Shown here: one piece after another, positions 1 through 58,803 of the stretch
Layout of the letters: each line of letters begins with the position of its first letter
How positions within the stretch are numbered: the stretch's first letter is position 1
Virus record (IMG/VR): IMGVR_UViG_3300010399_000031
Coordinates: 179,404 to 243,403 of that record
Reading direction: 5' to 3' (one strand)
DNA length: 64,000 bases
Translations under genes and position numbers: made by a program
Notes under the pieces: generated by a model
Database searches by the model: none
Told to the model about the DNA's origin: nothing
The model's input: only the letters and a program-made list of their open reading frames with translations

Positions 1-1
1 G

Positions 2-352
2 AATCGCCCGTGGTTATTCAATGTATCAAACGGCCACAGTCACCCAGTATAGCGGAGTGCATCAATAGCAGACATTCACACAAGGTGGGTCAGTGTATCA
101 TGGAAAGTTAATTACCCATGGCATGAGAGTGTATTAGAGGATCAAAGACATCCAATCCCAAGCAATGTATCATAGTAGGGAATTCACCCAGTTGGAACAA
201 ATGTATCAAAATGTCGTATTCACCCATTCTTTGAAAATGCACCATCACCCCTTATTCATCCACCAAAAGGAAGTGTATCAAGAAGCACAACTCACCCATT
301 GGGTTGTAGTGTATCAACAGCAGCAATTCACCCAATGCGATACAGTGTCGCC
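2..352 (+). repeat. TIGR-like dual-repeat guide-RNA array (36-nt period; 9 complete units, likely truncated by the window edge)
   Basis: Repeat 1, consensus A(G/A)TG(T/C)ATCA, at 20, 56, 92, 128, 164, 200, 236, 272, 308 and (degenerate) 344. Repeat 2, consensus ATTCACCCA, at 2, 38, 74, 110, 146, 182, 218, 254, 290, 326. Every interval is a unique 9-nt spacer. Adjacent to a Nop-domain gene. Confidence 0.93.
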
Positions 353-409
353 CACCACGACACACTAAGAAACCATTTTTATTCGAACTAAAGAAAGGAA
401 TAGAGCACC

Positions 410-1663
410 ATGAGCCAAGAAACGATTATCCCCACATACAACCCGAACATCTCCGTGATTCGCACGATGGTGCGCTCAGCTTACGACATGCAACTGTTGC
501 GCATCCAGATGGGCAACCGCGTGACCGCCAGCTTCAAAGTCAAGCTCGGCCTTCGCCAAGACGGCATGAGTGAGAAGGACCTCGAAAAGCAAGAAAAGGG
601 TCTACTCGATCAGCTACGTGCTTCTTACGCCCGCATCACCGACGGCATCATCGAAGAGCATGGTGAAGACATCAAGGTCAAGAAGTTGCCGACTGAAAAG
701 AAGTTCGTCGGCGATGAGCTGATTACCCACTACAGCGAATTGTTGCTCGTAGATAACTACCTGGCTACGCTCAGGAATGAAGAGCGACATTTCAAGGACA
801 TGGAGAAGATCCTAAAGAAGATCCCGGTCTACACCGAGTTCCTCGAAAACGTTCGTGGTATTGGTCCAGCCATGGCGGGCGTGATCATCTCCGAGATTGA
901 CATCTACAAGGCGCAGTATCCGTCTAGCCTTTGGATGTTGGCAGGGCTCGATGTCGTTCACGTCGGTAAGTACACCGACGATAAAGGGGTCGAGCGCACA
1001 GTGCGGGGTTGGGAGATCGACCAATGGTACTCCAACGACCAGAACATCGATAAGGAGTTCCTCGCTGAAGGCAAGTACCCGGTTCACTTCGAAGCCCATG
1101 GTCGTTCGCGTAAAGAGTTTTGTCTCGTGCGACGCACCTACGTCAACAAAGCGGGTGAGCAAAGTGAGCGTGACTCAATCACGTTCAATCCGTTTCTGAA
1201 GACGAAGTTGGTCGGGGTGCTCGGCACGTCTTTCTTGCGTGCTGGTATCGCAACGGTTGATGGTAAGAAGACCGGTGGTGCGGCTCGCTTGGCACTTGCC
1301 AAGGCAGAAGGGTTCGATCCGAAGGATTACGTTGAGATGGACGAAGATCAAGCAGTGATCGTCTACCTACGTGCTAAGGGTCACGAGGTTGTGGTGGAGC
1401 CGAGCCCTTACTCGGTGATTTACAACAACTACAAGAACCGTCTGAACAACGATCCGCGTCACATCGAGAAGAGCGCGCTTCACAAGCACAACATGGCCAT
1501 TCGCTACATGGTCAAGCGTTTTCTGGTTGACCTCTATAACCACTGGCGTAAGCTGGAAGGTTTGGTTGTCGCCCCGGAGTATTCGGAAGGGGTACTCGGC
1601 AAAGTACACGGTGAAGCTAAGGAAGCTGGTTGGCAACATCCGCGCTATCGTAGGTCCGCTTAA
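410..1663 (+). CDS. tasA: Nop-domain / IS110-related RNA-binding protein lacking RuvC (TasA-like)
   Basis: Coiled coil with 'YDMQLLRIQMGNR', 'LENVRGIGPAMAGVIISEI', 'SSLWMLAGLDVV', 'FNPFLKTKL' and 'HNMAIRYMVKRFLVDLY'. No N-terminal DEDD RuvC domain and no IS110 catalytic SG loop. SD AAGGA upstream; directly downstream of the array. Confidence 0.85.
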   Translation: MSQETIIPTYNPNISVIRTMVRSAYDMQLLRIQMGNRVTASFKVKLGLRQDGMSEKDLEKQEKGLLDQLRASYARITDGIIEEHGEDIKVKKLPTEKKFVGDELITHYSELLLVDNYLATLRNEERHFKDMEKILKKIPVYTEFLENVRGIGPAMAGVIISEIDIYKAQYPSSLWMLAGLDVVHVGKYTDDKGVERTVRGWEIDQWYSNDQNIDKEFLAEGKYPVHFEAHGRSRKEFCLVRRTYVNKAGEQSERDSITFNPFLKTKLVGVLGTSFLRAGIATVDGKKTGGAARLALAKAEGFDPKDYVEMDEDQAVIVYLRAKGHEVVVEPSPYSVIYNNYKNRLNNDPRHIEKSALHKHNMAIRYMVKRFLVDLYNHWRKLEGLVVAPEYSEGVLGKVHGEAKEAGWQHPRYRRSA

Positions 1664-1690
1664 ATCCAGTCATTCAGAGAGGAATTTACC

Positions 1691-2065
1691 ATGAGCATCA
1701 AAGAACTTCTGGAACCGTTTCAAGTCGACGCTGAACAGCAACCGATTACACCCGAAGTGTTTTTTGCACGAAGCTTTCAAGTCGCATTGAGGGACCTGAA
1801 TATCACTTCGGTGAAATGGGACGAACTGATGTCGGCGTATCTGGAGAAACACTTCGCTGCACAAGGGGTGGTGGCAACTCGTGCAGATATTAAATCTGCA
1901 CGAGCAAACCTCTCGAAGCAACTGTGCGAACTGAACATGTCGTGGAAAGTCTATCTGAAGGGCATGGAAATGCTCGGCTTCGATATGGTCAATATCCGAC
2001 TTGCTGGCGTCAAGCAGGAAGAGGTCCAGACTACCTTGGGATTAGCGGTTAAGCTTCCTCAATAA
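1691..2065 (+). CDS. hypothetical protein, likely co-transcribed with the Tas-like gene
   Basis: ORF with SD GAGGA, 27 nt after the upstream stop; terminator follows. Confidence 0.75.
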   Translation: MSIKELLEPFQVDAEQQPITPEVFFARSFQVALRDLNITSVKWDELMSAYLEKHFAAQGVVATRADIKSARANLSKQLCELNMSWKVYLKGMEMLGFDMVNIRLAGVKQEEVQTTLGLAVKLPQ

Positions 2066-2087: not shown

Positions 2088-2117
2088 GAGAGCTTCGGCT
2101 CTCCCTTTTCTTTTTTT
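2088..2117 (+). terminator. intrinsic terminator
   Basis: GAGAGC-TTCG-GCTCTC followed by a T-rich tract. Confidence 0.8.
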
Positions 2118-2179
2118 CCCGAAATACCAGAAATCGAACCCCTCAACAAGCTACAGTAAGAAAATATAAGGGAAACAAA

Positions 2180-2521
2180 ATGAGTGAGAGAAAGTTGTTT
2201 GGAATCGGTCAACGTGTGACCCACTTCGACGGGGGTCCAGGTACGCATGGTAAAGGTACGATCGTCGCTTATAACGGTGTGAAGCCAGATAGCTATGCGG
2301 CTAAGAATCCCGCTAAGGCAGCTGAATTAGTGGCTGGGTGTTTTACTGACCCGAAACTGAAAGAAGCGATGGCGGGCGCTTTGGTCAACAGCTTCTACGA
2401 TGGTGATCGATATCCCTACGTCGTACAGTGGGATCCGCGTGTCGACGATAGCGACATCGCGCGGAAATACCCGAATGGGTACAAAGACGTCTACGGTGAC
2501 GAACTCAAACCCATCGAGTGA
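2180..2521 (+). CDS. hypothetical protein
   Basis: ORF with SD AAGGGA. Confidence 0.75.
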   Translation: MSERKLFGIGQRVTHFDGGPGTHGKGTIVAYNGVKPDSYAAKNPAKAAELVAGCFTDPKLKEAMAGALVNSFYDGDRYPYVVQWDPRVDDSDIARKYPNGYKDVYGDELKPIE

Positions 2522-2546
2522 AAAAATCTTCGATTGACGACATAAG

Positions 2547-2570
2547 TGGGGACTCCGTAAGGAGTCCCCA
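2547..2570 (-). terminator. hairpin between convergent genes
   Basis: TGGGGACTCC-GTAA-GGAGTCCCCA; CTTATGTC follows on the - strand. Confidence 0.7.
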
Positions 2571-2574
2571 AACG

Positions 2575-3324
2575 TTACTCTATCGACGTAACGCTCCAGA
2601 AGTCTTCAGCCAGATCTGGCGAAAGGACATAGTCGAAGGGCAGGTAGAAGTAACCATTTTCACCCCAGCCCGATCCCCAGCTATTCCTAATAATGAAGAG
2701 ACGCTTGATGCGATCGTAACCGACGATCAACACGGCGTGACCACCCAAGCATTGTTCCTTGTTCACATCGGGCATGGGTACCAAACCGCTGGCTGCCACT
2801 TCGTCCGATTCGAGCGAATCGTAGACGTAGATGCCAAAGGCGATCGGGTAACCCGATGCAAGCGCGTGCAAAAGGTCGTCTTCGGTTTGATTCACACGGC
2901 GGTACGCAATCGCTTTGTGTTTCAAAGCGTCGTTGTACGCTTCGAGCGAGGGCTTCAGTTTGAAGTTTTCCTCGACGTACGGACACAGCGTTTCGTTGCA
3001 GGTACCCAGCTGTGCGATCACTTTGATGCCGTCGCGGATCTCGGCACCCGAGTCTTCCGTGAGTGTGCCTTCGAGACCGCGCTCGCCGTAGTAGACGAAA
3101 AGGCGCGAGAGACGAATCGGTTGCTCACGCTGTTTGTTCTCGTCGTACTCCAGCGCCCCGACGATGGCGTGGGCCGTGCACGAACCCAACTCACCTTGGT
3201 CTTCGACCGGGGAGCAGCCAGGGCGCAAATCGATCTGGTCGGGAATATCGATCGGTGCAGCTGCCGAGTATTTGTGGTCACGCGGATCGTGTTTGTCTTT
3301 GACACGATTGTACAGTCGCTTCAT
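2575..3324 (-). CDS. papain-like cysteine peptidase (family C1A)
   Basis: Catalytic motifs DQGELGSCT, GGHAV and RNSWG..WG..GYF; 'IDLRP' start of the mature domain. Confidence 0.93.
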   Translation of the reverse strand: MKRLYNRVKDKHDPRDHKYSAAAPIDIPDQIDLRPGCSPVEDQGELGSCTAHAIVGALEYDENKQREQPIRLSRLFVYYGERGLEGTLTEDSGAEIRDGIKVIAQLGTCNETLCPYVEENFKLKPSLEAYNDALKHKAIAYRRVNQTEDDLLHALASGYPIAFGIYVYDSLESDEVAASGLVPMPDVNKEQCLGGHAVLIVGYDRIKRLFIIRNSWGSGWGENGYFYLPFDYVLSPDLAEDFWSVTSIE

Positions 3325-3402
3325 GTTTCACCTTAAGCGTAGCGTTGAAGTGGGATACTTCATACGATCGCATTAACTTTTTATATCGAGAAGGAACAAA
3401 TC

Positions 3403-12829: not shown

Positions 12830-13369
12830 ATGCTCACAATCGTCGAGCATCATTCTAGCAGTTATGGTCCAAGGACGTTTCATAACGCAAAAGCTGCTGA
12901 TTTGACAGTGGCCATTGCGGTGGATTACTCCACATTTGGTGAAAAGCTCACCATGAAAGCGGCAGGCTCGCACTTTATCGCTTGTCCGTTTAAGACGGAT
13001 GCTTTAACCAATGCCAGAGAGCTTTATAAGTCGCTGTACCGCTGGCGTGCCTCAGTACTCAATGTGGCCGGTAACGGGATGTCTACGTTTGTCAAACATG
13101 ACGTAACGCAAGAACAAGTGAATCAGTACATCTTTGATATCCTCTCGACTGTGCACAAACATTACCCTCTAGCTGGGATTGTATCTGGGGGTCAAACGGG
13201 TGCCGATATTGCAGGTGCAGCCGTGGGGTACAAGTTGGGCATTGCTACGACTGTGACATTGCCCCATGGGTTTAAACAGCGCGATACAACAGGTGTCGAT
13301 AGCAACCACACTCAAAAAGAGATTCGCCAGCAGATCCTTGATTTCGCAGAGAAAATTTACGCTGCGTGA
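12830..13369 (+). CDS. YpsA/SLOG-family (putative molybdenum-carrier-like) nucleotide-binding protein
   Basis: 'YGPRTFHNAKAADLT', 'VLNVAGN', 'IVSGGQTGADIAG'. Confidence 0.75.
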   Translation: MLTIVEHHSSSYGPRTFHNAKAADLTVAIAVDYSTFGEKLTMKAAGSHFIACPFKTDALTNARELYKSLYRWRASVLNVAGNGMSTFVKHDVTQEQVNQYIFDILSTVHKHYPLAGIVSGGQTGADIAGAAVGYKLGIATTVTLPHGFKQRDTTGVDSNHTQKEIRQQILDFAEKIYAA

Positions 13370-13395
13370 AATAATGTGCGAGAAACCATTGATGC

Positions 13396-13506
13396 GCAGT
13401 GTAGAGCCAGTGTACCCAGCTGAGGGAGAGGGGTTAAGCAGCTGGGGCGACTTGACACATGCTGATGCCCTCCATCATCATCGATGTTTCTGGGTAATAC
13501 CACTGC
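13396..13506 (+). ncRNA. structured RNA, unknown
   Basis: GCAGTG/CACTGC closing stem; CCCAGCTG/CAGCTGGG; TGATG/CATCA. Confidence 0.45.
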
Positions 13507-13527
13507 ACGGCTGCGGTGCAGGCGCAT

Positions 13528-13606
13528 GGGCGAGGGGTATCCACTCCCGGACGGAGAGTCTAGACAGTATAGGCTTTGTTGGGTTCGAATCCCAACCTTG
13601 GCCTCA
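13528..13606 (+). ncRNA. tRNA-like RNA with canonical T-arm
   Basis: GTTGGG-TTCGAAT-CCCAAC T-arm; acceptor-like GGGCGAGG/CCTTGGCC; non-canonical D and anticodon arms. Confidence 0.6.
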
Positions 13607-13625
13607 GCGACAGCAGAAGGATTGT

Positions 13626-13755
13626 GAGGAAGGCTAGGGAATCGATGATCCCAGCAGCGAATACCCCGTTTGCTGCCGAGTCGTAGTAACTGATCCTCGT
13701 GATGGGACGAGGTGTTGGTTGGCTCATTGCAGGTTCAATTCCTGCCCTTAACCTC
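13626..13755 (+). ncRNA. extended tRNA-like RNA with T-arm
   Basis: GCAGG-TTCAATT-CCTGC T-arm; GAGG-AAGG/CCTT-AA-CCTC closing stem; three internal hairpins. Confidence 0.55.
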
Positions 13756-13869
13756 GTTTTCTTTAGACCACTTAAGTGGCACATTGTTGGGTCTCGCCTT
13801 CACTGTTTCACTCCTGGGCGACTGCCATGACTTGACGATGCGCCAACCTAAGTAGTTTCTTGTAGTAGA

Positions 13870-13954
13870 CCCGAGGTAGCTCAGTCTGGTAGAGCGGCGT
13901 CTGTCCGGCCGGTAAAGACGCAGGTCGGTGGTTCAAATCCATCCCGAGGGGCCA
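13870..13954 (+). tRNA. aberrant tRNA (15-nt anticodon loop, encoded CCA; isotype undetermined)
   Basis: D-arm GCTC-AGTCTGGTA-GAGC; anticodon stem GCGTC/GACGC; T-arm GGTGG-TTCAAAT-CCATC; acceptor CCCGAGG/CCGAGGG; G73-CCA. Confidence 0.8.
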
Positions 13955-14013
13955 ATTTCGATAGTATCTGTAACACCCACGGCAGAGATGCCACTTACTA
14001 GGACTAGACCATC

Positions 14014-14304
14014 ATGTTGTATTTGAAAGTAATGTCGAATGAAGATTTACCGGATACCGATCCGCTTAAGGATTTCAGCATCATTCCGATCAATAACACT
14101 GATCGATTGGTGTTTGTGAAGGACCAGTCTTATCCTGAAACGGATGTGCACTGGTGTGCGCTGATTGGTCCTCACGCAGGGTCGAACCAGGATGGATTTG
14201 ACATTCCCAGTCACGACAAAGACCGAGTGGTCCCCTTAACTGGCAACGCCTATGTTTTGAACGAGCAAGGCAAAACCATCGCCAGTCACGGTGTCGTGAA
14301 ATAA
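14014..14304 (+). CDS. hypothetical protein
   Basis: 'MLYLKVMSNE...LTGNAYVLNEQGKTI'; SD AGGA. Confidence 0.75.
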   Translation: MLYLKVMSNEDLPDTDPLKDFSIIPINNTDRLVFVKDQSYPETDVHWCALIGPHAGSNQDGFDIPSHDKDRVVPLTGNAYVLNEQGKTIASHGVVK

Positions 14305-26324: not shown

Positions 26325-28547
26325 TCACCAATTTGTCCACGACGGATGAACGGGTTCGTCGTACTCCAACTTTCCACTGAAGTCCGATTCATACCCCTCT
26401 ATTTCTGCGAAGTCTTCAATCCCTAAGAAAGCGCCTGCGAAGACTTCCCGACGATCACCATCCCCACTCGTTTCACTAAAGTCCTCCAACGCCAACATGT
26501 ATCCTTCTAGCGCGGCTTGCGGACCTAAGGAACCAGCACCCAAAATCTGTTCGACTTGATCCTTACTCCACTGCATGATGTCATGTGAGCGGGTCGAGAT
26601 ATTGGGTTGACCGTTCGTATCTAACTTAACGTTCCAGATATGAACGGCTGAGTCCTGACCATTGCGATCCGTGCGAGCTACGGCTTGCTCGTACTCATAC
26701 GAGCGAAACGGCACGTTCATCATGATCGTGCTATTGGCCATCACAAGTGGCACTGCCGTGGATAGTGACGCGAAGGTCGCGATGAGGGGGTTGATGTCGG
26801 GGTTCTTCTCAAACGAACCCACGTGAGCCGCCAACTCGTTGTTGGTTTTCCCGTAAACGAGAATCGGATGAAACCCTTGATCACGAAAGAACTTAGCTGC
26901 CGCATCTACTACAGGCACATAACTCGTAAAGAAAATCGTTTTCTTGAGTGAGTGCTCGATAATTTGTGCGGGCGACATTGGAACCATGACCTCATGACCG
27001 TCTTTCTTGACTTCCTCGAACCACTTGCCCTTGAGCATATCTTCATGGCATTTCACCCTGTCTTGGCCCAGTACTTTACCCAAAGCCTCACCTTGGACTT
27101 TGAGCATGTAGTACTTCACGATGGATCGCACTTCTTTGAAGTTATCTCGCAACTCCTTAGGTAGCACCGGCATAATCACGGTTTTTTCGTAATGATTGCA
27201 ATAAGCACTCATCTCACGCATGGTGCGAGGATCAAAACCCTTGCGAATCTGTGCGATGTAGTGTTTATACAACTCGAAGGCTTTACGCTTATCATCCGAG
27301 GTGTGACCTGTCACCACTGTGACTAATCCAGCCGCAACCGATTGCTTAGGCAGATAGACGCGTTCAAAATACGCTAAGATGTCTTGATACATCTGGACAT
27401 AATTGCGCATGTTCTTTTGGTAGTAAGCCACACGCGCTTTGACGTACTCCACCATCCTATCTCGCACTGCATCAAGTGTGTAGTACTCGCCGTTGGCCAT
27501 CTCCACTTCGATGACATGGGTGTGGACTTCGGTTTTCACCACACTGCGTTTACTCACATGGAAGTGCACTTTCCCCATGCGGTGATGCAAGATGTCATTG
27601 GCGGTCGAGGAGGACTTACCGTAGATTGTTTGGAAACGCTTTTGCGCATCTTCATCAAAGAACGGATCGATCGTGGAGAACAAGGGCGTGGCTTCCCGAC
27701 CCACGGCTTTAATCGGCGTACCCGAGGACCACACCACGTGTTGACTCTTGGTGTAGCGGCACAACTCACGAAAGAGTTCCGAGCGCAGCGATTCAAACTC
27801 GTTTAACCCGTGTGACTCATCAAGTGCCACCATCACACGAGAAGGTACACCAATCTGATGCAAGTGATGCAACAGGGTTTCAAGCGCATCGAAGTGACAG
27901 ATGAGGTACTTATCTTGTCGGGTAGGGGCGCGATCCATGAGCGAGTGCCAGTAATGCGGCACTTTGTGAAAGCGCTCCTCGTACGTTTGCATCCAGACGC
28001 GCTCGACCGCGTTTTTCGGGCACACGGTAATTAAGACTTCAACCCCCAGGCACAAGGACAAACCAATGCACATAAGGGTCTTACCCGTACCGGGGTCAGC
28101 CCCGAGTAGGTAACCTTTGAGTTGATACTTCGGGACGACCTCGTTGTAGATACCAAAAAACTGCATCTGGTGATCTTGCATCGTGACGTTAAGCTCGGAG
28201 AGGTGTCCGTAGTTCAGAATGTCAGGATGCTGCTCTTGGGTGCTTTTTAACCACGTATTTTGAAAGAGCAATTCCAGCGTTCTTTTCAACGCCCGGATGT
28301 TGTGTCCTTTGTGGTCTTCGTCGACGATACGTTGCAAGATGTACGCCACATCGACTGCAAAAAAGCGGTTAAAGACCACTTCGCTGTTGCTGATATGCGT
28401 GAATACATTATCAGCAATCTTGCGAGTATTCCAAATTTCGTAGATGGAGCGCTGGACGGTGTCGCCTGGCAGCCCCGAGATGGTGATCAGGTCTCCTGAT
28501 TCTCGCACTGAGATGAGTCCGATCAACCGTCGCAGGCTCGAAAACAT
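26325..28547 (-). CDS. superfamily 2 (SNF2/DEAD-like) helicase
   Basis: Walker A DPGTGKT, DESH, SGTP, QAVARTDRNGQ; start 28547 has SD GAGGT. Confidence 0.9.
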   Translation of the reverse strand: MFSSLRRLIGLISVRESGDLITISGLPGDTVQRSIYEIWNTRKIADNVFTHISNSEVVFNRFFAVDVAYILQRIVDEDHKGHNIRALKRTLELLFQNTWLKSTQEQHPDILNYGHLSELNVTMQDHQMQFFGIYNEVVPKYQLKGYLLGADPGTGKTLMCIGLSLCLGVEVLITVCPKNAVERVWMQTYEERFHKVPHYWHSLMDRAPTRQDKYLICHFDALETLLHHLHQIGVPSRVMVALDESHGLNEFESLRSELFRELCRYTKSQHVVWSSGTPIKAVGREATPLFSTIDPFFDEDAQKRFQTIYGKSSSTANDILHHRMGKVHFHVSKRSVVKTEVHTHVIEVEMANGEYYTLDAVRDRMVEYVKARVAYYQKNMRNYVQMYQDILAYFERVYLPKQSVAAGLVTVVTGHTSDDKRKAFELYKHYIAQIRKGFDPRTMREMSAYCNHYEKTVIMPVLPKELRDNFKEVRSIVKYYMLKVQGEALGKVLGQDRVKCHEDMLKGKWFEEVKKDGHEVMVPMSPAQIIEHSLKKTIFFTSYVPVVDAAAKFFRDQGFHPILVYGKTNNELAAHVGSFEKNPDINPLIATFASLSTAVPLVMANSTIMMNVPFRSYEYEQAVARTDRNGQDSAVHIWNVKLDTNGQPNISTRSHDIMQWSKDQVEQILGAGSLGPQAALEGYMLALEDFSETSGDGDRREVFAGAFLGIEDFAEIEGYESDFSGKLEYDEPVHPSWTNW

Positions 28548-28593
28548 AGAGACCTCGTTAGCTGGTAGAGTATTGATAGCACAAGATTTCGCA

Positions 28594-28632
28594 AATAAAA
28601 AGGCTAGAGGCGGGCTTACCCGTCCTCTAGCC
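28594..28632 (-). terminator. intrinsic terminator
   Basis: on the - strand: GGCTAGAGG...CCTCTAGCC followed by TTTTTATTT. Confidence 0.75.
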
Positions 28633-28878
28633 AAATATGTCATCATTTCTGAGAAGAATAAACATGGTGGACGATAGTTGGATTTTCACCACCGGCCCTT
28701 TAACCGAATGCGGCTATGCCCAAACCGGGTAGGCGTGCTATTCGGTCCCAATGCCGCGCACACTGGCTCGCTGATCGTCCGTTGATCACGATTTCATGAG
28801 GACTTGCCGAGCAACCTGCGATTCCAGATCTCCGGCGTCAGCAGTCCCCGACCGACCGGGAACGGTTTCGGTAACTTG

Positions 28879-29688: not shown

Positions 29689-31257
29689 TTAGTGCGCCAT
29701 TTCCGCCATCTGGAAATCATTGGGTACGCCATCCCAGAAGGGGAATTCTTCCCCTGATCCTACCGGTCCACCACCGACTTTCTTCAGTGAACTATCCGGT
29801 CCATTGATGTCGGGTCGCAACCCGCCGATCTTGTGCAACTCCAGAACAAGGTATTTATCGACCTCATCCATCACGGGCATCCCACGGTGTTTGCCACGCA
29901 TGATAGTGAGGAACGAGCGGCCATTCATCTTCTCGATGTGGATGTACAACTCCCCATCGACTTCCTGAGATAGACGCTTACATCCATCCCAGTAATTCTT
30001 CTCGGCAATGTCGCGGACAAAGTCCACGGCCCCCTCCCGTATCTTACCCATGGCCTCTGAGGAAAGCTGATGCGGGGTGATAAGCAAAATCTTGCGAGGA
30101 GTGCAAAAGTTCTTCATCCGACGGAACAAGTCCCGGATATCATCTCCAATGGAGCCTTGCGCCAATCCCTTCTTATTGATCAGTGCCAGGTAGTCCAAGA
30201 ATAAGCAATGGATTTCAAAGCCTTCAGCTTCAAACTCCATGCACTTGTTGATGATGTTCTGGTAATTCCACTGCGTGGGGTCAACGTACATCACGCGTAG
30301 TTTGTAGCCGGACGCTTGCAGACGTGTGGTCACATACTGCGCGATGTCTTCGGCTGATCTGGACTTCATGTGCTCCTTGGTGCACTTCAGTCCCGTTTCG
30401 TTTTCATACAGGTGTTCGTAGATAAAGCGCATATTCTGCTCCGCTGTATCTTCGAACGTGATGCGCAAAATCATGGGTCGCTTAGTGGCGTCCAACATGT
30501 GCGGCACATTGTAAAGTGGGATTGTGTCAAAAATTGACAGGTTCATCCCAGTCTTGTACTTGTGCTGAAGGGCCCCGATGACCCATTCCTCTCCCCGGCG
30601 AAAGCCGCCTTGCAGCATTCGGTTTATACCCTGGTAGCCCGTTTTCATGACACCGAAACCCATGTCCATTTCTTTGACGTTTTCAAACGCCTTGGCCACG
30701 GAGTCGATATTGCCAAAGTCCACATCTGAGACGATGGCAGGATCACGGAGAATAGCGTCGACCTGAAACGGTTCCAGCTTGGTCATAGCCTCCGAGATAA
30801 ACTTACCCAGATCAGGGATCGAGTCGGGGCGGAACATGAAGGTGGAAGAAATATCCCGGATGATCTGTCCTAACTCCACCCGTCGGAAATGATCGTGAAT
30901 CTGCTTTTTTTTGGTGAGAATGAGTTTCTTTAGCTTCGATTGAGGGATCTCGCTACCGATACCTTTCTCGAATGCCTGAAATAGATCGGTGTCGTCCTTG
31001 GTATCGACCTTCAGGCGAACTAATAAGTCCTCTGCTTCGTACTCGGTAGTAAATGGTTGATCGCACATCCAAACAGCGGTGTTTTTCAGTGCTTGCAGGA
31101 TTTCTCGACTATGGTCAAGACCGATCGAGACTTCGGGCAACTTTGCTTCCAGAATAATCCGGCGCACCAAATTCGACGAATTCTCGCTTTTGGTGTCGAG
31201 CTGACTTTCCAGATACAAAAGTGTGATCCCGGTGGTCAACAGCAACTTGTGGTCCAT
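29689..31257 (-). CDS. dnaB: DnaB-like replicative helicase (phiKZ gp118-like)
   Basis: TGYQGINRMLQGGFRRGE, ALQHKYKT, LDYL, TPHQLS, RGKHR; divergent from the capsid gene as in phiKZ. Confidence 0.9.
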   Translation of the reverse strand: MDHKLLLTTGITLLYLESQLDTKSENSSNLVRRIILEAKLPEVSIGLDHSREILQALKNTAVWMCDQPFTTEYEAEDLLVRLKVDTKDDTDLFQAFEKGIGSEIPQSKLKKLILTKKKQIHDHFRRVELGQIIRDISSTFMFRPDSIPDLGKFISEAMTKLEPFQVDAILRDPAIVSDVDFGNIDSVAKAFENVKEMDMGFGVMKTGYQGINRMLQGGFRRGEEWVIGALQHKYKTGMNLSIFDTIPLYNVPHMLDATKRPMILRITFEDTAEQNMRFIYEHLYENETGLKCTKEHMKSRSAEDIAQYVTTRLQASGYKLRVMYVDPTQWNYQNIINKCMEFEAEGFEIHCLFLDYLALINKKGLAQGSIGDDIRDLFRRMKNFCTPRKILLITPHQLSSEAMGKIREGAVDFVRDIAEKNYWDGCKRLSQEVDGELYIHIEKMNGRSFLTIMRGKHRGMPVMDEVDKYLVLELHKIGGLRPDINGPDSSLKKVGGGPVGSGEEFPFWDGVPNDFQMAEMAH

Positions 31258-31371
31258 TATTAGTGCATTTCTATGAGTAACGAATTCGGTTGCGGGAATC
31301 TCTTTCATAGAGATCGACGCCGCGCGTATTTTTAGTCAACAAAACTTTTCTGACCCTTTCAGGAGTGTCTT

Positions 31372-50417: not shown

Positions 50418-52037
50418 TCAAGTTTTTAACTGATCGAGGTAGTCTTGATACTCCCTCATCCACTTCAGATTCATGTTCAGCATTTGCCGATCCACCACAA
50501 AATCATGAACTTGCTGATCCCATTTAATCTGGTGGTAATCATACCCAAATTCATTAATGAACGCGCTAACAACATAGCCGTTCACAATCACAGGTGAGCC
50601 TTCCACCACTGGAATAAACACCTGTGTATCCGGATCATAGTTTGGTACCACCACTGGGGTGCGTTTAACAAAACCATGTAATGAGGCAAACTCAGCTGGT
50701 CCCTTTAAGAAACTGTGAGGGTCCTTCAAACCTCGAATCAAACCCATTTCAATTTCTTTGTGAATTTGCACATGATCGTGTACCCACCACCAATCTTTAC
50801 CATCTTGCCTCACCCAGTGCGGATGTTCAGCCGACCACTGGTGGTGTGGATCTTCCTCAAACATCAACAACTTTCGCTCCTCACCCACCCGTGAAACGTG
50901 TAAATGTTTAACCGTGGCTGGACCGGTTGGTCCCATGACTATATCGCCTGCCTGGATCGTCTGAATTTGTTTCCACGACCGATCCGCCATAAGGACGAGT
51001 GATCCCGCCACAAAACACGAAGCACCACCACCACCGCCCGCAGCACCCGTAACAGTCCCAACAAAGATACCGTTCCATTTCACCACAGTTTTATTACCAC
51101 CTGAATCACTGGGCGCACCACCATAGAACAGGGTAAGGTTTAAAGTGAGGTCTTTAAATCGCGGACCCATAATCGGTCGACCATTGATCATGGCAAAAGC
51201 ACACTGATTCCAATCTCCACCCGTATAGATATTACCATTGCGGTCCACCATACCGTTTGCAATGGTAAATCCATTAAAGGTGTATCCCGTTTGTGAATCA
51301 AGAAAGTTAGTGTACTGGTTCCCTGAGAAAGAAAGCTGATTCAAATCAACAAAGACACACGCAATAAATGTGTGAGCGGACGAGCCGGCGAAATCTAAGT
51401 ACCAAAGACTACACTGCCAGTTATTACTGGAGTTAGGTTGAATCGCCGACCAAGGGGCGCCGATGTCGTCGCCGGACCCACTAACTGAAAAAGCACAGTT
51501 ACCCTGGGTGGCCAAAAGATATCCGTTAAGATCGTTTCCGCCGTACGCACGCGTCCAAGACATTTGGGAAATGTCAAGACCATACCCCCAATTACCAGGC
51601 GTATACGCCATGGAGTACGGGGTATTGAAATACGAGTACGAATCGATATACGTTCTTGCGTCGGTCGTTCCCCCGTTTGCCAAATCATAAAACGGGTAAG
51701 CGTTATTGATGGTTCCCTGACCATCTGGGTTTCCGGTGTTGGCTGGGTAAGAACCCGCGGGGGTGTTATCGCTCGGTGTACCTTTAGCCATCGTAGTGAG
51801 GTTAAAGGCAATGTAGGCGCCATTATCGCAATTGAGATCGAAAGCGGCAATCGTCGCCCCGTGAACTGGAGCGACGCCAAAACTCTTCCCGTACCAATAA
51901 CTCCAAGCGTAACGTTGCCCAGGACTTACACCCGCCAATCTTGACAAGAGCGTATTTCCAGCATCAATTGTTCCGCTCTCACGACATTCGGCTTGAGCCT
52001 GACCGATACTGATCGCGCCAGACGTTTGCATCGTCAT
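50418..52037 (-). CDS. tail-fibre-associated protein with C-terminal Hint domain
   Basis: N-terminal 'MQTSGAISIG' fibre-attachment-like motif; GGGGGAS|CFVAGSLVLMAD, SAEHP, VIVNGYVVS. Confidence 0.8.
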   Translation of the reverse strand: MTMQTSGAISIGQAQAECRESGTIDAGNTLLSRLAGVSPGQRYAWSYWYGKSFGVAPVHGATIAAFDLNCDNGAYIAFNLTTMAKGTPSDNTPAGSYPANTGNPDGQGTINNAYPFYDLANGGTTDARTYIDSYSYFNTPYSMAYTPGNWGYGLDISQMSWTRAYGGNDLNGYLLATQGNCAFSVSGSGDDIGAPWSAIQPNSSNNWQCSLWYLDFAGSSAHTFIACVFVDLNQLSFSGNQYTNFLDSQTGYTFNGFTIANGMVDRNGNIYTGGDWNQCAFAMINGRPIMGPRFKDLTLNLTLFYGGAPSDSGGNKTVVKWNGIFVGTVTGAAGGGGGASCFVAGSLVLMADRSWKQIQTIQAGDIVMGPTGPATVKHLHVSRVGEERKLLMFEEDPHHQWSAEHPHWVRQDGKDWWWVHDHVQIHKEIEMGLIRGLKDPHSFLKGPAEFASLHGFVKRTPVVVPNYDPDTQVFIPVVEGSPVIVNGYVVSAFINEFGYDYHQIKWDQQVHDFVVDRQMLNMNLKWMREYQDYLDQLKT

Positions 52038-57174: not shown

Positions 57175-58803
57175 TTAAGATGCGGGTACCGACGTCTTCA
57201 TCGAAACAACTCGGATGTTGCTATACATCCCCGCCCAAATGCCAATCGCATCATTGACCTGAATGACGGTTGCATGCCGAAAAGCCAATTCGCTTTCCAT
57301 CCACGTAACAAGACTAACCTTCGGATTGAGCTTCTCCAGACGCCGTAGTCCATTACGATCCAGCATGTCAATGCCAAGAGTGAGTTTAAGCGACTCTTGA
57401 TAAAGTTCACCCGTTGCAGCGTCTGGCTTATAGTTAGCCAGTACGTCTAATGCCGCGAACCCGACGCAGTAATCATCCTTGAGCACGGTAAGTGTCGTGG
57501 ATTCCTTCTTACTGGTCTTGACAACTGTCTCATAAAGAATAGGTGTCAAATCCGTAATTGCTAACTCGGATACCCCAGACAGATACTGTTCGAGTTTCTG
57601 TCCGAGAAATGCAATGTTCTCCACGGCCCGATAAGCGAGCTTTGCGGGACGAAATTGCGTGGTGAGTGGTTCGGCATCTGCTCCCACCAAATCCAGCAAA
57701 TATGGATTGGATCGATAGGTGGCAAGATGACCGTAGTTGCTCAACTCCTTGTGAACCACACTGCTAAAGACATTGCCGATCAACATCTTCATGAGGTTAT
57801 CGGTGTTATCCGCCAAATTCGATTGATGATCGAAAATCGTCTCGATCACCGGGTCAGGCGTATGTAACCGAACCACGGCAAAGGCGCCATCGGCTGAACG
57901 CATGCCATGTTCTCCGTCTTCCTTACCATGATTTCCCAAGTAGTATTCACCTGGCGTCAGATGTGTGCGACGGGTATTGAAGTACAGATTTTGATGAGAG
58001 ATAAACGGGTGCTTGTTCGACTCGTACCCCCAGTAGCCCTCGGGTGCACTCACGATCACTTCATTTTTTACGATTCCAGACAGCGAGTGGTTAGTACCGA
58101 TGGCGGCCCAACGATCGGCTTTGACATTACCCAGAATATCCGAGTGAGCCCGCACCCAACCAAACTTCACAGTGATACCTTTAGCACGCAATTCATCGGT
58201 GAGATCCGAGAGCTTGCGCCAGTATTTCAGATTGGTGATCTCACTACCATCGGATCTTTTCCACCCATGGCGTTTCCAACTCCCAACCCAGCTTTCCATA
58301 CCTTTACGGACGTACTCGCTGTCAGTGAAGATGCTCACTTGCTTGATAGCAAACTGCTCGGCGTGACGCAAACCATGGTAGGCGGCATCTAGCTCTGCAA
58401 TGTTGTTCGACACTTTGATACCGCGCGCCATGTCGATTTCGTACGAACCGAAACCGTCGATATAATGCAGCGGTGTGACGGCATTGACGCTATCGTCTTC
58501 TCCAAGGGTTTTGAGTTGCGCAACCTCAATCTTGGTCATGTAACCGTCAGAGGTAAGAATATGGTCGGGGTTACCTGAACCTTTTTTCGGTACTTCAAAC
58601 GAGTAGAGATACCCGTGTAGTCCCCAACCACCGTAACCGGGATTGGGGATGCAAGAGCCATCGGTCCACAGACACATACCTTGCAACACAACGGGTGCAG
58701 GCTGCTCTTGTTTGGATTCAGATGCGGCTTTGCGCTCTGCTTCAACAGCGGCGATATCATCGGGATGATTCGACTGATGGTATCCTTGTTCTTTATTACA
58801 CAT
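57175..58803 (-). CDS. rnhA: ribonuclease HI with C-terminal extension (phiKZ gp155-like)
   Basis: WTDGSC.PNPG.GGWG, NNIAEL, TDSEYV, WVRAH..GN..AD. Confidence 0.9.
   Translation of the reverse strand: MCNKEQGYHQSNHPDDIAAVEAERKAASESKQEQPAPVVLQGMCLWTDGSCIPNPGYGGWGLHGYLYSFEVPKKGSGNPDHILTSDGYMTKIEVAQLKTLGEDDSVNAVTPLHYIDGFGSYEIDMARGIKVSNNIAELDAAYHGLRHAEQFAIKQVSIFTDSEYVRKGMESWVGSWKRHGWKRSDGSEITNLKYWRKLSDLTDELRAKGITVKFGWVRAHSDILGNVKADRWAAIGTNHSLSGIVKNEVIVSAPEGYWGYESNKHPFISHQNLYFNTRRTHLTPGEYYLGNHGKEDGEHGMRSADGAFAVVRLHTPDPVIETIFDHQSNLADNTDNLMKMLIGNVFSSVVHKELSNYGHLATYRSNPYLLDLVGADAEPLTTQFRPAKLAYRAVENIAFLGQKLEQYLSGVSELAITDLTPILYETVVKTSKKESTTLTVLKDDYCVGFAALDVLANYKPDAATGELYQESLKLTLGIDMLDRNGLRRLEKLNPKVSLVTWMESELAFRHATVIQVNDAIGIWAGMYSNIRVVSMKTSVPAS

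Follow-up and report, generated by a model that had tools for sequence, protein, structure and literature searches.

A TIGR-TasA locus with an enlarged, nuclease-free TasA on a probable phiKZ-like jumbo-phage contig

What do two additional segments within its RNA-binding domain do for a TIGR-associated (Tas) protein that carries no nuclease, and does the small gene directly behind it belong to the same system? These questions are raised by a 64-kb stretch of DNA, called the window in the following, which is part of the 243-kb IMG/VR contig UViG_3300010399_000031 and covers about a quarter of this genome. Close to its beginning the window contains a TIGR array, the gene tasA and an open reading frame (ORF) for a protein of 124 amino acids (aa), p124 (Table 1). 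An earlier note on this DNA had proposed that the inserts of the Tas protein or the 124-aa protein as its partner could supply an effector or a phage-nucleus import function in place of a nuclease. Our analysis leads to a different answer, as we consider it probable that the locus is a TIGR-TasA system of a phiKZ-like jumbo phage, in which the inserts elaborate the surface that handles DNA and RNA and p124 is a gene of the phage backbone. The same contig is also referred to as locus L001, which adds 3.6 kb before the window (L001 coordinate = window coordinate + 3591).

The tasA product shows the coiled coil and the Nop RNA-binding domain that are characteristic for TIGR-Tas proteins. With its AlphaFold2 model (pLDDT 88.3, pTM 0.82) as query, the best 11 Foldseek matches are TasH (9w04, 9w03, 9vzx) and TasR (9mty) with a probability of 1.0, followed by the IS621 recombinase, Nop5 and Prp31. 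A phmmer search of the protein against the PDB also matched TasR (9mty) and SpTasH, and a profile of 69 sequences found TasR 9mty with an expect value (E) of 4e-20 and SpTasH with E 7.5e-14. The same 69 aligned Tas sequences underlie the conservation figures, the insert counts and the tree described below. The NCBIfam model NF052498 (TIGR_Tas_endo) matches with 93.4 bits (E 1.9e-26) in two separate stretches. The coiled coil, which is expected to mediate dimerisation by homology to TasR and PlTasA, begins in the model at residue 12 and just 11 residues lie ahead of it, so that there is no room for an N-terminal nuclease and the protein belongs to the TasA subclass; the N-terminal HNH or RuvC domain of the TasH and TasR subclasses is missing. 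As a Pfam scan of the protein found neither HNH nor RuvC nor any other Pfam domain, the earlier observation that no nuclease motif is evident was correct. The PADLOC library gave no match to the protein.

Two short elements of the core can be compared with characterised proteins. In the FNPFLKTK motif of helix alpha-4 P261 and K264 are invariant, and conservation reaches 90% or more at N260, L263, T265 and K266. From the analogy to SpTasH (W203/K211) and PlTasA (F252/R260) this motif is expected to provide the aromatic-basic pair at the DNA-unwinding junction. The C-terminal loop possesses a candidate for the tyrosine-histidine dyad that has been described for cutting the pre-tigRNA (Xu 2026, bioRxiv 10.64898/2026.09.09.750476): Y391, with a conservation of 90% or more, aligns with the processing tyrosine Y289 of SpTasH, and the histidine H400 does not vary in the family, which makes this loop a predicted processing site.

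SpTasH from the Salicola phage CGphi29 (PDB 9w03, 9w04, 21kl) and TaTasR (9mty) are thus the best matches of the window TasA in both sequence and fold, and they have the dual-repeat 36-nucleotide (nt) guide, the alpha-4 motif and the C-terminal Tyr/His loop in common with it, but unlike them the window TasA is devoid of HNH and RuvC. In this respect it resembles the described TasA proteins from Flavonifractor plautii (FpTasA) and Minisyncoccota (MbTasA) as well as PlTasA (Faure 2025, Xu 2026, Guan 2026), which likewise consist of coiled coil and Nop domain without a nuclease, are encoded beside a TIGR array and would act in the same way as expected here, by RNA-guided DNA binding and repression. 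According to the portion of the literature available to us, the characterised TasA proteins (MbTasA, BlTasA, PlTasA) are mostly of stem-loop types. IS110 recombinases (IS621; PDB 8wt6, 8wt9) share an RNA-binding Nop-like domain and give a weak fold and profile match, but the window TasA lacks their N-terminal DEDD/RuvC domain and stands beside an array of many guides instead of one bridge RNA. The IS110 model NF033542 reaches 17.9 bits against a cut-off of 140 and covers only aa 14-181. That this weak match stops at aa 181 would fit the idea of the earlier note that IS110 recombinases have their catalytic Ser loop in the region of the first insert. With neither a DEDD domain nor a sufficient score the protein does not qualify as an IS110 recombinase.

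The array beside tasA is built from two alternating 9-nt repeats and 9-nt spacers, in agreement with the 8-12-nt repeats and spacers of about 9 nt of TIGR arrays. Read in register on L001 it starts 556 nt before the window, behind the terminator of the upstream gene, and comprises about 25 units of 36 nt with the consensus AGTGTATCA, 9-nt spacer, AnTCACCCA, 9-nt spacer. It opens with an edge repeat truncated at its 5' end (element TTTAATCA) that has retained only the ATCA end, and it closes with the 3'-truncated edge repeat AGTGT at 344-348. Such an organisation matches the definition of a dual-repeat TIGR array by Faure 2025 (PMC12045711), in which the opening edge repeat lacks its 5' part and the closing one its 3' part. 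Together with the family identity of the protein, this array anatomy identifies the locus as a dual-repeat TIGR-TasA system. Arrays usually finish with a terminator (Faure 2025), and the small hairpin directly after the last edge repeat could be a weak array-end terminator or attenuator, its folding energy of -7.9 kcal/mol (z-score -1.4 versus shuffled sequence) not being significant alone. Some units are irregular: within L001 3108-3145 and 3397-3540 (window -483 to -51) one unit has 37 nt and one spacing 35 nt, both repeats are almost lost in the unit at L001 3469, and several repeats carry point changes.

Regarding the two inserts, the description in the earlier note was accurate in its counts. 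Exactly 75 aa lie between AGLDVV (aa 178-183, nt 941-958) and FNPFLKT (from aa 259), and the proposed insert of about 50 aa behind SFLRAG (aa 274-279) is a block of 52 aa (aa 280-331) ending with EVVVEP. Both are real, being found in 55 of the 69 aligned relatives and modelled with a pLDDT of about 95. Their positions follow from the alignment with TaTasR, for which Xu 2026 assigned the wedge to G210-K230 and insertion 1 to Q247-T249: G179 of the window protein aligns with G210, the first wedge residue, and the profile alignment places SFIK-QRT-SVY of TaTasR opposite SFLRAG-[52 aa]-SPY. Therefore the first insert is the wedge and the second one occupies the insertion-1 site. The wedge has 75-80 aa in the window protein versus 21 aa in TaTasR, and the insertion-1 site 52 aa versus 3 aa. 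Since the compact dual-repeat TasA relatives that we sampled (284-288 aa) have 32 aa instead of 75 at the wedge and 0-3 aa instead of 52 at the insertion-1 site, the first insert adds only about 43 aa to a hairpin that is already there, and only the second is wholly added. Thus the 75 aa are an enlargement rather than an insertion of that length. The enlarged, partly acidic wedge and the folded 52-aa module account for the window TasA being about 130 aa longer than these compact relatives.

An effector, as the earlier note had suggested, is not recognisable in the inserts, which have neither the fold of a nuclease or effector nor conserved residues of a catalytic type. Their conserved positions are chiefly hydrophobic or glycine plus one arginine, and no cluster of acidic residues or of histidines was found among them. 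The wedge is beta-rich, and the insert region folded alone gave two modules that stand apart from each other (pTM 0.47). This region could not be matched to a known fold, the best VIA wide-search hit having a Z of 3.4 and the best Foldseek match against the PDB an E of 0.44. WWE-, OB-, SAP- and LEM-like rows for the insert region were all at noise level, and a resemblance of the wedge to the N-terminal winged helix of ArgR was discarded, as the profile E of 0.33 is not significant and the predicted structure consists mostly of strands. The wedge extension is consistently acidic (median net charge -3), and the basal wedge and alpha-4 are basic. Solved Tas complexes show the displaced DNA strand being separated and capped by the wedge and hairpin, which in TasH also dock the HNH domain. 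Insertion 1 is located beside alpha-4 and inside the spacer loop of the guide (Xu 2026).

To see how widespread this architecture is, it has to be kept in mind that the Tas family is large, with at least 1,966 proteins matching at E ≤ 0.001, of which the best 120 have nearly all 383-461 aa. In a tree calculated from the core alone, after the insert columns had been taken out, the compact TasA forms represent a well-supported clade (99/96) and the remainder consists of the 55 proteins that have both inserts, with the exception of one protein that has lost the 52-aa module and one with a short wedge; one member of the compact clade shows an unrelated wedge expansion. Thus, the two inserts define a large TasA subfamily. 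Many of these long TasA proteins are encoded on contigs of 160-315 kb, often above 200 kb and so of jumbo-phage size. Two metagenomic long-tasA genes (L128:646-3027, 793 aa; L129:15-2072, 685 aa) additionally carry an intein with Hint and LAGLIDADG homing-endonuclease domains inside the coding sequence (Pfam E 2.5e-12).

The long and compact forms also differ in locus organisation. In each of the nine long-TasA loci that were examined (L001-L008, L032) the array stands directly upstream of tas, whereas its place is downstream of the gene in those compact-TasA loci with a TRF-detected 36-nt array that were compared (L011-L020, L029-L031). The arrays of L001-L006 were found by a lag-36 self-similarity scan and had been missed by TRF because the conserved part is only half of each unit. 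The guide unit of 36 nt with its 9-nt repeats and 9-nt spacers is equal in both forms, so the inserts are no adaptation to a longer guide. What differs is the sequence of the repeats, with AGTGTATCA / AnTCACCCA for the long and AACGAGTCA / AGAAAACCA for the compact TasA.

The phage itself could be placed by its other genes. Its virion protein most resembles those of phiKZ-like phages, for example Burkholderia FLC9 and the Ralstonia phages RP12 and RSL2, and the nearest relatives of this and other window genes are phiKZ-like jumbo phages of Burkholderia, Ralstonia and Xanthomonas; when the region was compared with cultured phages by megablast, nothing matched.

The arrangement of p124 had looked like that of an accessory gene, and the observation behind this holds: its ATG (1691) follows the tas stop (1663) after 27 nt and it precedes the first terminator (hairpin 2088-2103), so that it lies in the same terminator-bounded unit as tasA. 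Operons of TasA and TasParB (Faure 2025, fig. S14) likewise have a small gene in one operon with tasA, but unlike TasParB the 124-aa protein has no ParB-like domain or other Pfam match and its linkage to tasA is not conserved. The search for it by tblastn and profile searches covered 112 viral-contig loci (32 from the first scans and 80 from later ones, on partly overlapping contigs) and 80 metagenome tas loci, 13 of which encode a long TasA. In the first 31 other tas loci, including the six with a TasA 78-80% identical to that of the window, tblastn found no copy; in these six (L002-L006, L032) other, unrelated small ORFs stand between tas and the Peptidase_C1 gene, and the slot downstream of long tasA is also filled with unrelated ORFs in L007, L008 and L120-L125. 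Over the entire survey, members of the p124 family occur in only two phages with tas, that of the window and one other. The neighbourhood comparison that had been proposed in the earlier note therefore speaks against a conserved partner, the gene being unlinked in the relatives. A complex prediction for TasA and the 124-aa protein gave a score of 0.00, which is no verdict and counts neither way.

Further support for a resident gene comes from phages without tas. A full HMMER scan detected 152 remote homologues of p124, which have either a single domain (110-160 aa) or two domains in tandem (220-250 aa). The tandem form, a duplication of the domain of about 80 aa, accounts for about half of the family (P0122-P0270), and the conserved core motif is roughly R-G-N-L-x-K-E-L followed by M-T-W-K-V-F-x-K-G-L-x-F-L. 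The protein matches PHROG 4910 (E 1e-10) and PHROG 7801, both of unknown function; its family profile had no match in the PDB and Pfam, a sequence comparison with the PDB none either, and the PADLOC and NCBIfam libraries none as well. The tas-less locus L036 shows the order GntR-like gene, 206-aa gene, 199-aa gene, p124 homologue, further genes, Peptidase_C1 and four more shared genes, with the 206-aa gene being 70% identical to the gene upstream in the window and Peptidase_C1 60% identical, and the array and tasA of the window phage occupy the place of the 199-aa gene. In L201, also without tas, the order is p124 homologue, 111-aa gene, Peptidase_C1, p151 homologue and p121 homologue. Thus p124 is kept in the same backbone position in L036/L037 and L201, which have the gene order of the window, and family members without tas nearby were also found in L033, L035, L200 and L202. 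Cultured jumbo phages with p124 homologues encode no Tas homologue. The sole Tas homologue in the cultured-phage collection is ORF034 (13180-14217, labelled 'transposase', 30% identity) of Ralstonia phage phiRSL1 (L038, NC_010811.2). Behind this ORF 1.4 kb are free of annotated genes and may represent its array.

The neighbouring genes show where the cassette stands. The gene p113 is located downstream of tasA and p124 in the window, and its homologue upstream of the array in the five close relatives L002, L004, L005, L006 and L032 (about 1575-2350), which means that the array-tasA cassette stands in different slots of a variable region bounded by Peptidase_C1, a gene 49-60% identical in L002-L006, L032, L036 and L201. 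We conclude that only the array and tasA form the conserved module and that p124 is a real gene, but a resident backbone gene of this phage group and not a dedicated Tas partner; it happens to stand behind the inserted cassette and to share its terminator.

For guide processing, dimerisation, an action by binding only and the role of the inserts we infer the following course. The array would be transcribed from upstream, and TasA would bind the transcript and probably use its Tyr391/His400 loop to cut this RNA inside the edge repeat, releasing tigRNAs of 36 nt. By analogy to the homologous systems a coiled-coil dimer of TasA would then carry one tigRNA, the two 9-nt spacers of which would each base-pair with a different strand of the 18-bp DNA target, and in the absence of a nuclease the complex would act by its binding as a block to transcription or replication. 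Other nuclease-free TasA proteins have been shown experimentally to be RNA-guided transcription repressors (Xu 2026), and RNA-guided DNA binding and repression is also the most likely function of the tasA product described here. Because the inserts occupy two sites of the Nop domain, the wedge and insertion 1, they should lie on the surface that handles nucleic acids, where the enlarged wedge and the 52-aa module would provide additional area to hold displaced strands, flanking duplex or guide loop. They do not appear to be an enzymatic effector, and the acidic wedge extension may leave room for protein contact instead.

This last point leads to other explanations for the inserts. They could form a platform on which a separate effector docks, this being either the 124-aa protein or some factor with its gene elsewhere, which would make long TasA a guide-directed recruiter and more than a roadblock. 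The consistent acidity of the wedge extension and the rigid fold of both modules are in line with such a platform, as is L046, a second long-TasA locus with a distant p124-family gene directly downstream, but no gene is conserved beside long tasA, where the unrelated ORFs listed above are found, and p124 homologues occur in phages that have no tas, among them cultured jumbo phages. We therefore regard recruitment as rather improbable. That the inserts have instead co-evolved with the guide RNA and mainly contact features of the tigRNA, as in stem-loop TIGR systems, is quite unlikely too. Insertion 1 lies within the tigRNA spacer loop, insertions track guide features in the stem-loop clades (Xu 2026) and the repeat sequences are unlike between long and compact TasA, but unit, repeats and spacers have the same length in both classes, which leaves no extra RNA element for the inserts to hold.

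It could also be thought that the inserts adapt TasA to a nucleus-forming jumbo phage, as an import or sorting determinant or as a means of staying outside the phage nucleus. The concentration of long TasA on contigs of jumbo-phage size and the similarity of the window virion protein to those of phiKZ-like phages would agree with this, but the inserts are placed where the Nop domain handles nucleic acids, and we judge such an adaptation to be highly improbable. To our knowledge no import signal that could be recognised in the sequence has been described for nucleus-forming jumbo phages. In a broader form, long TasA would be a distinct functional subtype whose inserts dock a factor from another gene of the phage or of the host, or determine where the complex acts relative to the phage nucleus. 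This we consider unlikely, although if it were true the nuclease-free long TasA would do more than block transcription.

Our preferred reading, a phiKZ-like jumbo-phage TIGR-TasA with an enlarged nucleic acid-handling surface and p124 as a backbone gene, also has to face some observations that weigh against it. What we know of the locus comes from its sequence and a predicted model. The NF052498 score is just under the curated cut-off of 100 bits, probably because the inserts split the match in two, and H400 is located two residues beyond the position aligned with SpTasH H296. In the array, the edge repeat A-G-UG-UA-UCA possesses the UG but ends with UCA where CCA is usual, and the loop repeat AnUCACCCA has the CCA end but no UG start, although it is known that these UG (box D) and CCA (box C) motifs can diverge (Faure 2025). 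None of the spacers has a target with up to two mismatches within 67.6 kb of the own phage genome and 280 kb of related loci; hits were obtained only with three mismatches, at a frequency like that of scrambled-arrangement controls (both tandem arrangements, up to three mismatches), and in whole collections an 18-mer would already be expected by chance at their database size. The acidic wedge extension fits contact with a protein at least as well as contact with DNA. In L046, where TasA is 56% identical, the 180-aa ORF directly downstream is the distant p124-family member (E 6e-8), so that such a gene follows tasA in two of about 16 distinct long-TasA loci. We read these two co-occurrences as a shared use of the variable region rather than as a functional pair, though a loose association of p124 with long TasA may exist.

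Apart from the TIGR locus, the window contains genes of a replication type, namely a divergent DnaB-like ATPase (E 2e-119), an SNF2-related helicase and an RNase H-domain protein. A 539-aa ORF (50418-52037, -) shows weak Hint-domain matches in residues 340-393 (Pfam E 1e-4, below cut-off) and may contain an intein. The 272-aa ORF at 2518-3336 (+) overlaps the Peptidase_C1 gene on the opposite strand almost entirely and is probably not a gene.

Table 1: Features of the TIGR-TasA locus and its surroundings in window coordinates.
Feature	Position	Strand	Basis or remark
TIGR array, 3' part, dual-repeat	1..348	+	36-nt period; 9 full units in window plus AGTGT
Small hairpin, 6-bp stem	345..363	+	directly after last truncated edge repeat
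tasA, 417-aa TIGR-associated Nop-domain protein without nuclease domain	410..1663	+	fold, profile, NCBIfam
Coiled-coil helices, aa 12-46 and 55-83	443..658	+	model secondary structure; expected dimerisation element
Enlarged wedge, aa 179-258, includes insert 1	944..1183	+	G179 aligned to TaTasR G210
Lineage-specific wedge extension, about aa 187-229	968-1096	+	acidic
Helix alpha-4, aa 259-279, FNPFLKTK motif	1184..1246	+	near-invariant motif
52-aa folded insertion, aa 280-331, insert 2	1247..1402	+	strand-helix-helix-strand, 'insertion 1' site
C-terminal loop with Y391 and H400, candidate pre-tigRNA-cutting Y/H dyad	1571..1609	+	alignment, conservation
p124, 124-aa ORF, phage-family backbone gene	1691..2065	+	homologues, synteny
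Intrinsic-terminator-like hairpin and T-run	2088..2118 (hairpin 2088-2103)	+	closes array-tasA-p124 unit
p113, 113-aa ORF, backbone marker	2180..2521	+	homologue comparison
Papain-family Peptidase_C1 gene, synteny anchor	2575..3324	-	Pfam E 2.6e-20
Replication-type genes as a group	29689-31308, 26325-28646, 57175-58803	-	

TIGR-Tas, TasA and the variable wedge and insertion-1 segments have already been published, and the long TasA variant is very probably included in a published survey that covers about 20,000 loci. Since dual-repeat Tas proteins are described, in the part of the published text available to us, as compact with minimal variation, and a literature search found no paper linking TIGR-Tas with jumbo phages, long TasA represents a variant that has not yet been described in words.

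In summary, the long-TasA clade, which is apparently rich in jumbo phages, departs from the compact dual-repeat pattern by two folded modules, and a neighbouring gene of the p124 type should not carry the annotation of a Tas accessory. TIGR-Tas systems are recent and under development as compact programmable DNA binders. If the modules strengthen or prolong target binding or dock proteins, this would be useful for understanding the role of TasA during infection as well as for engineering.

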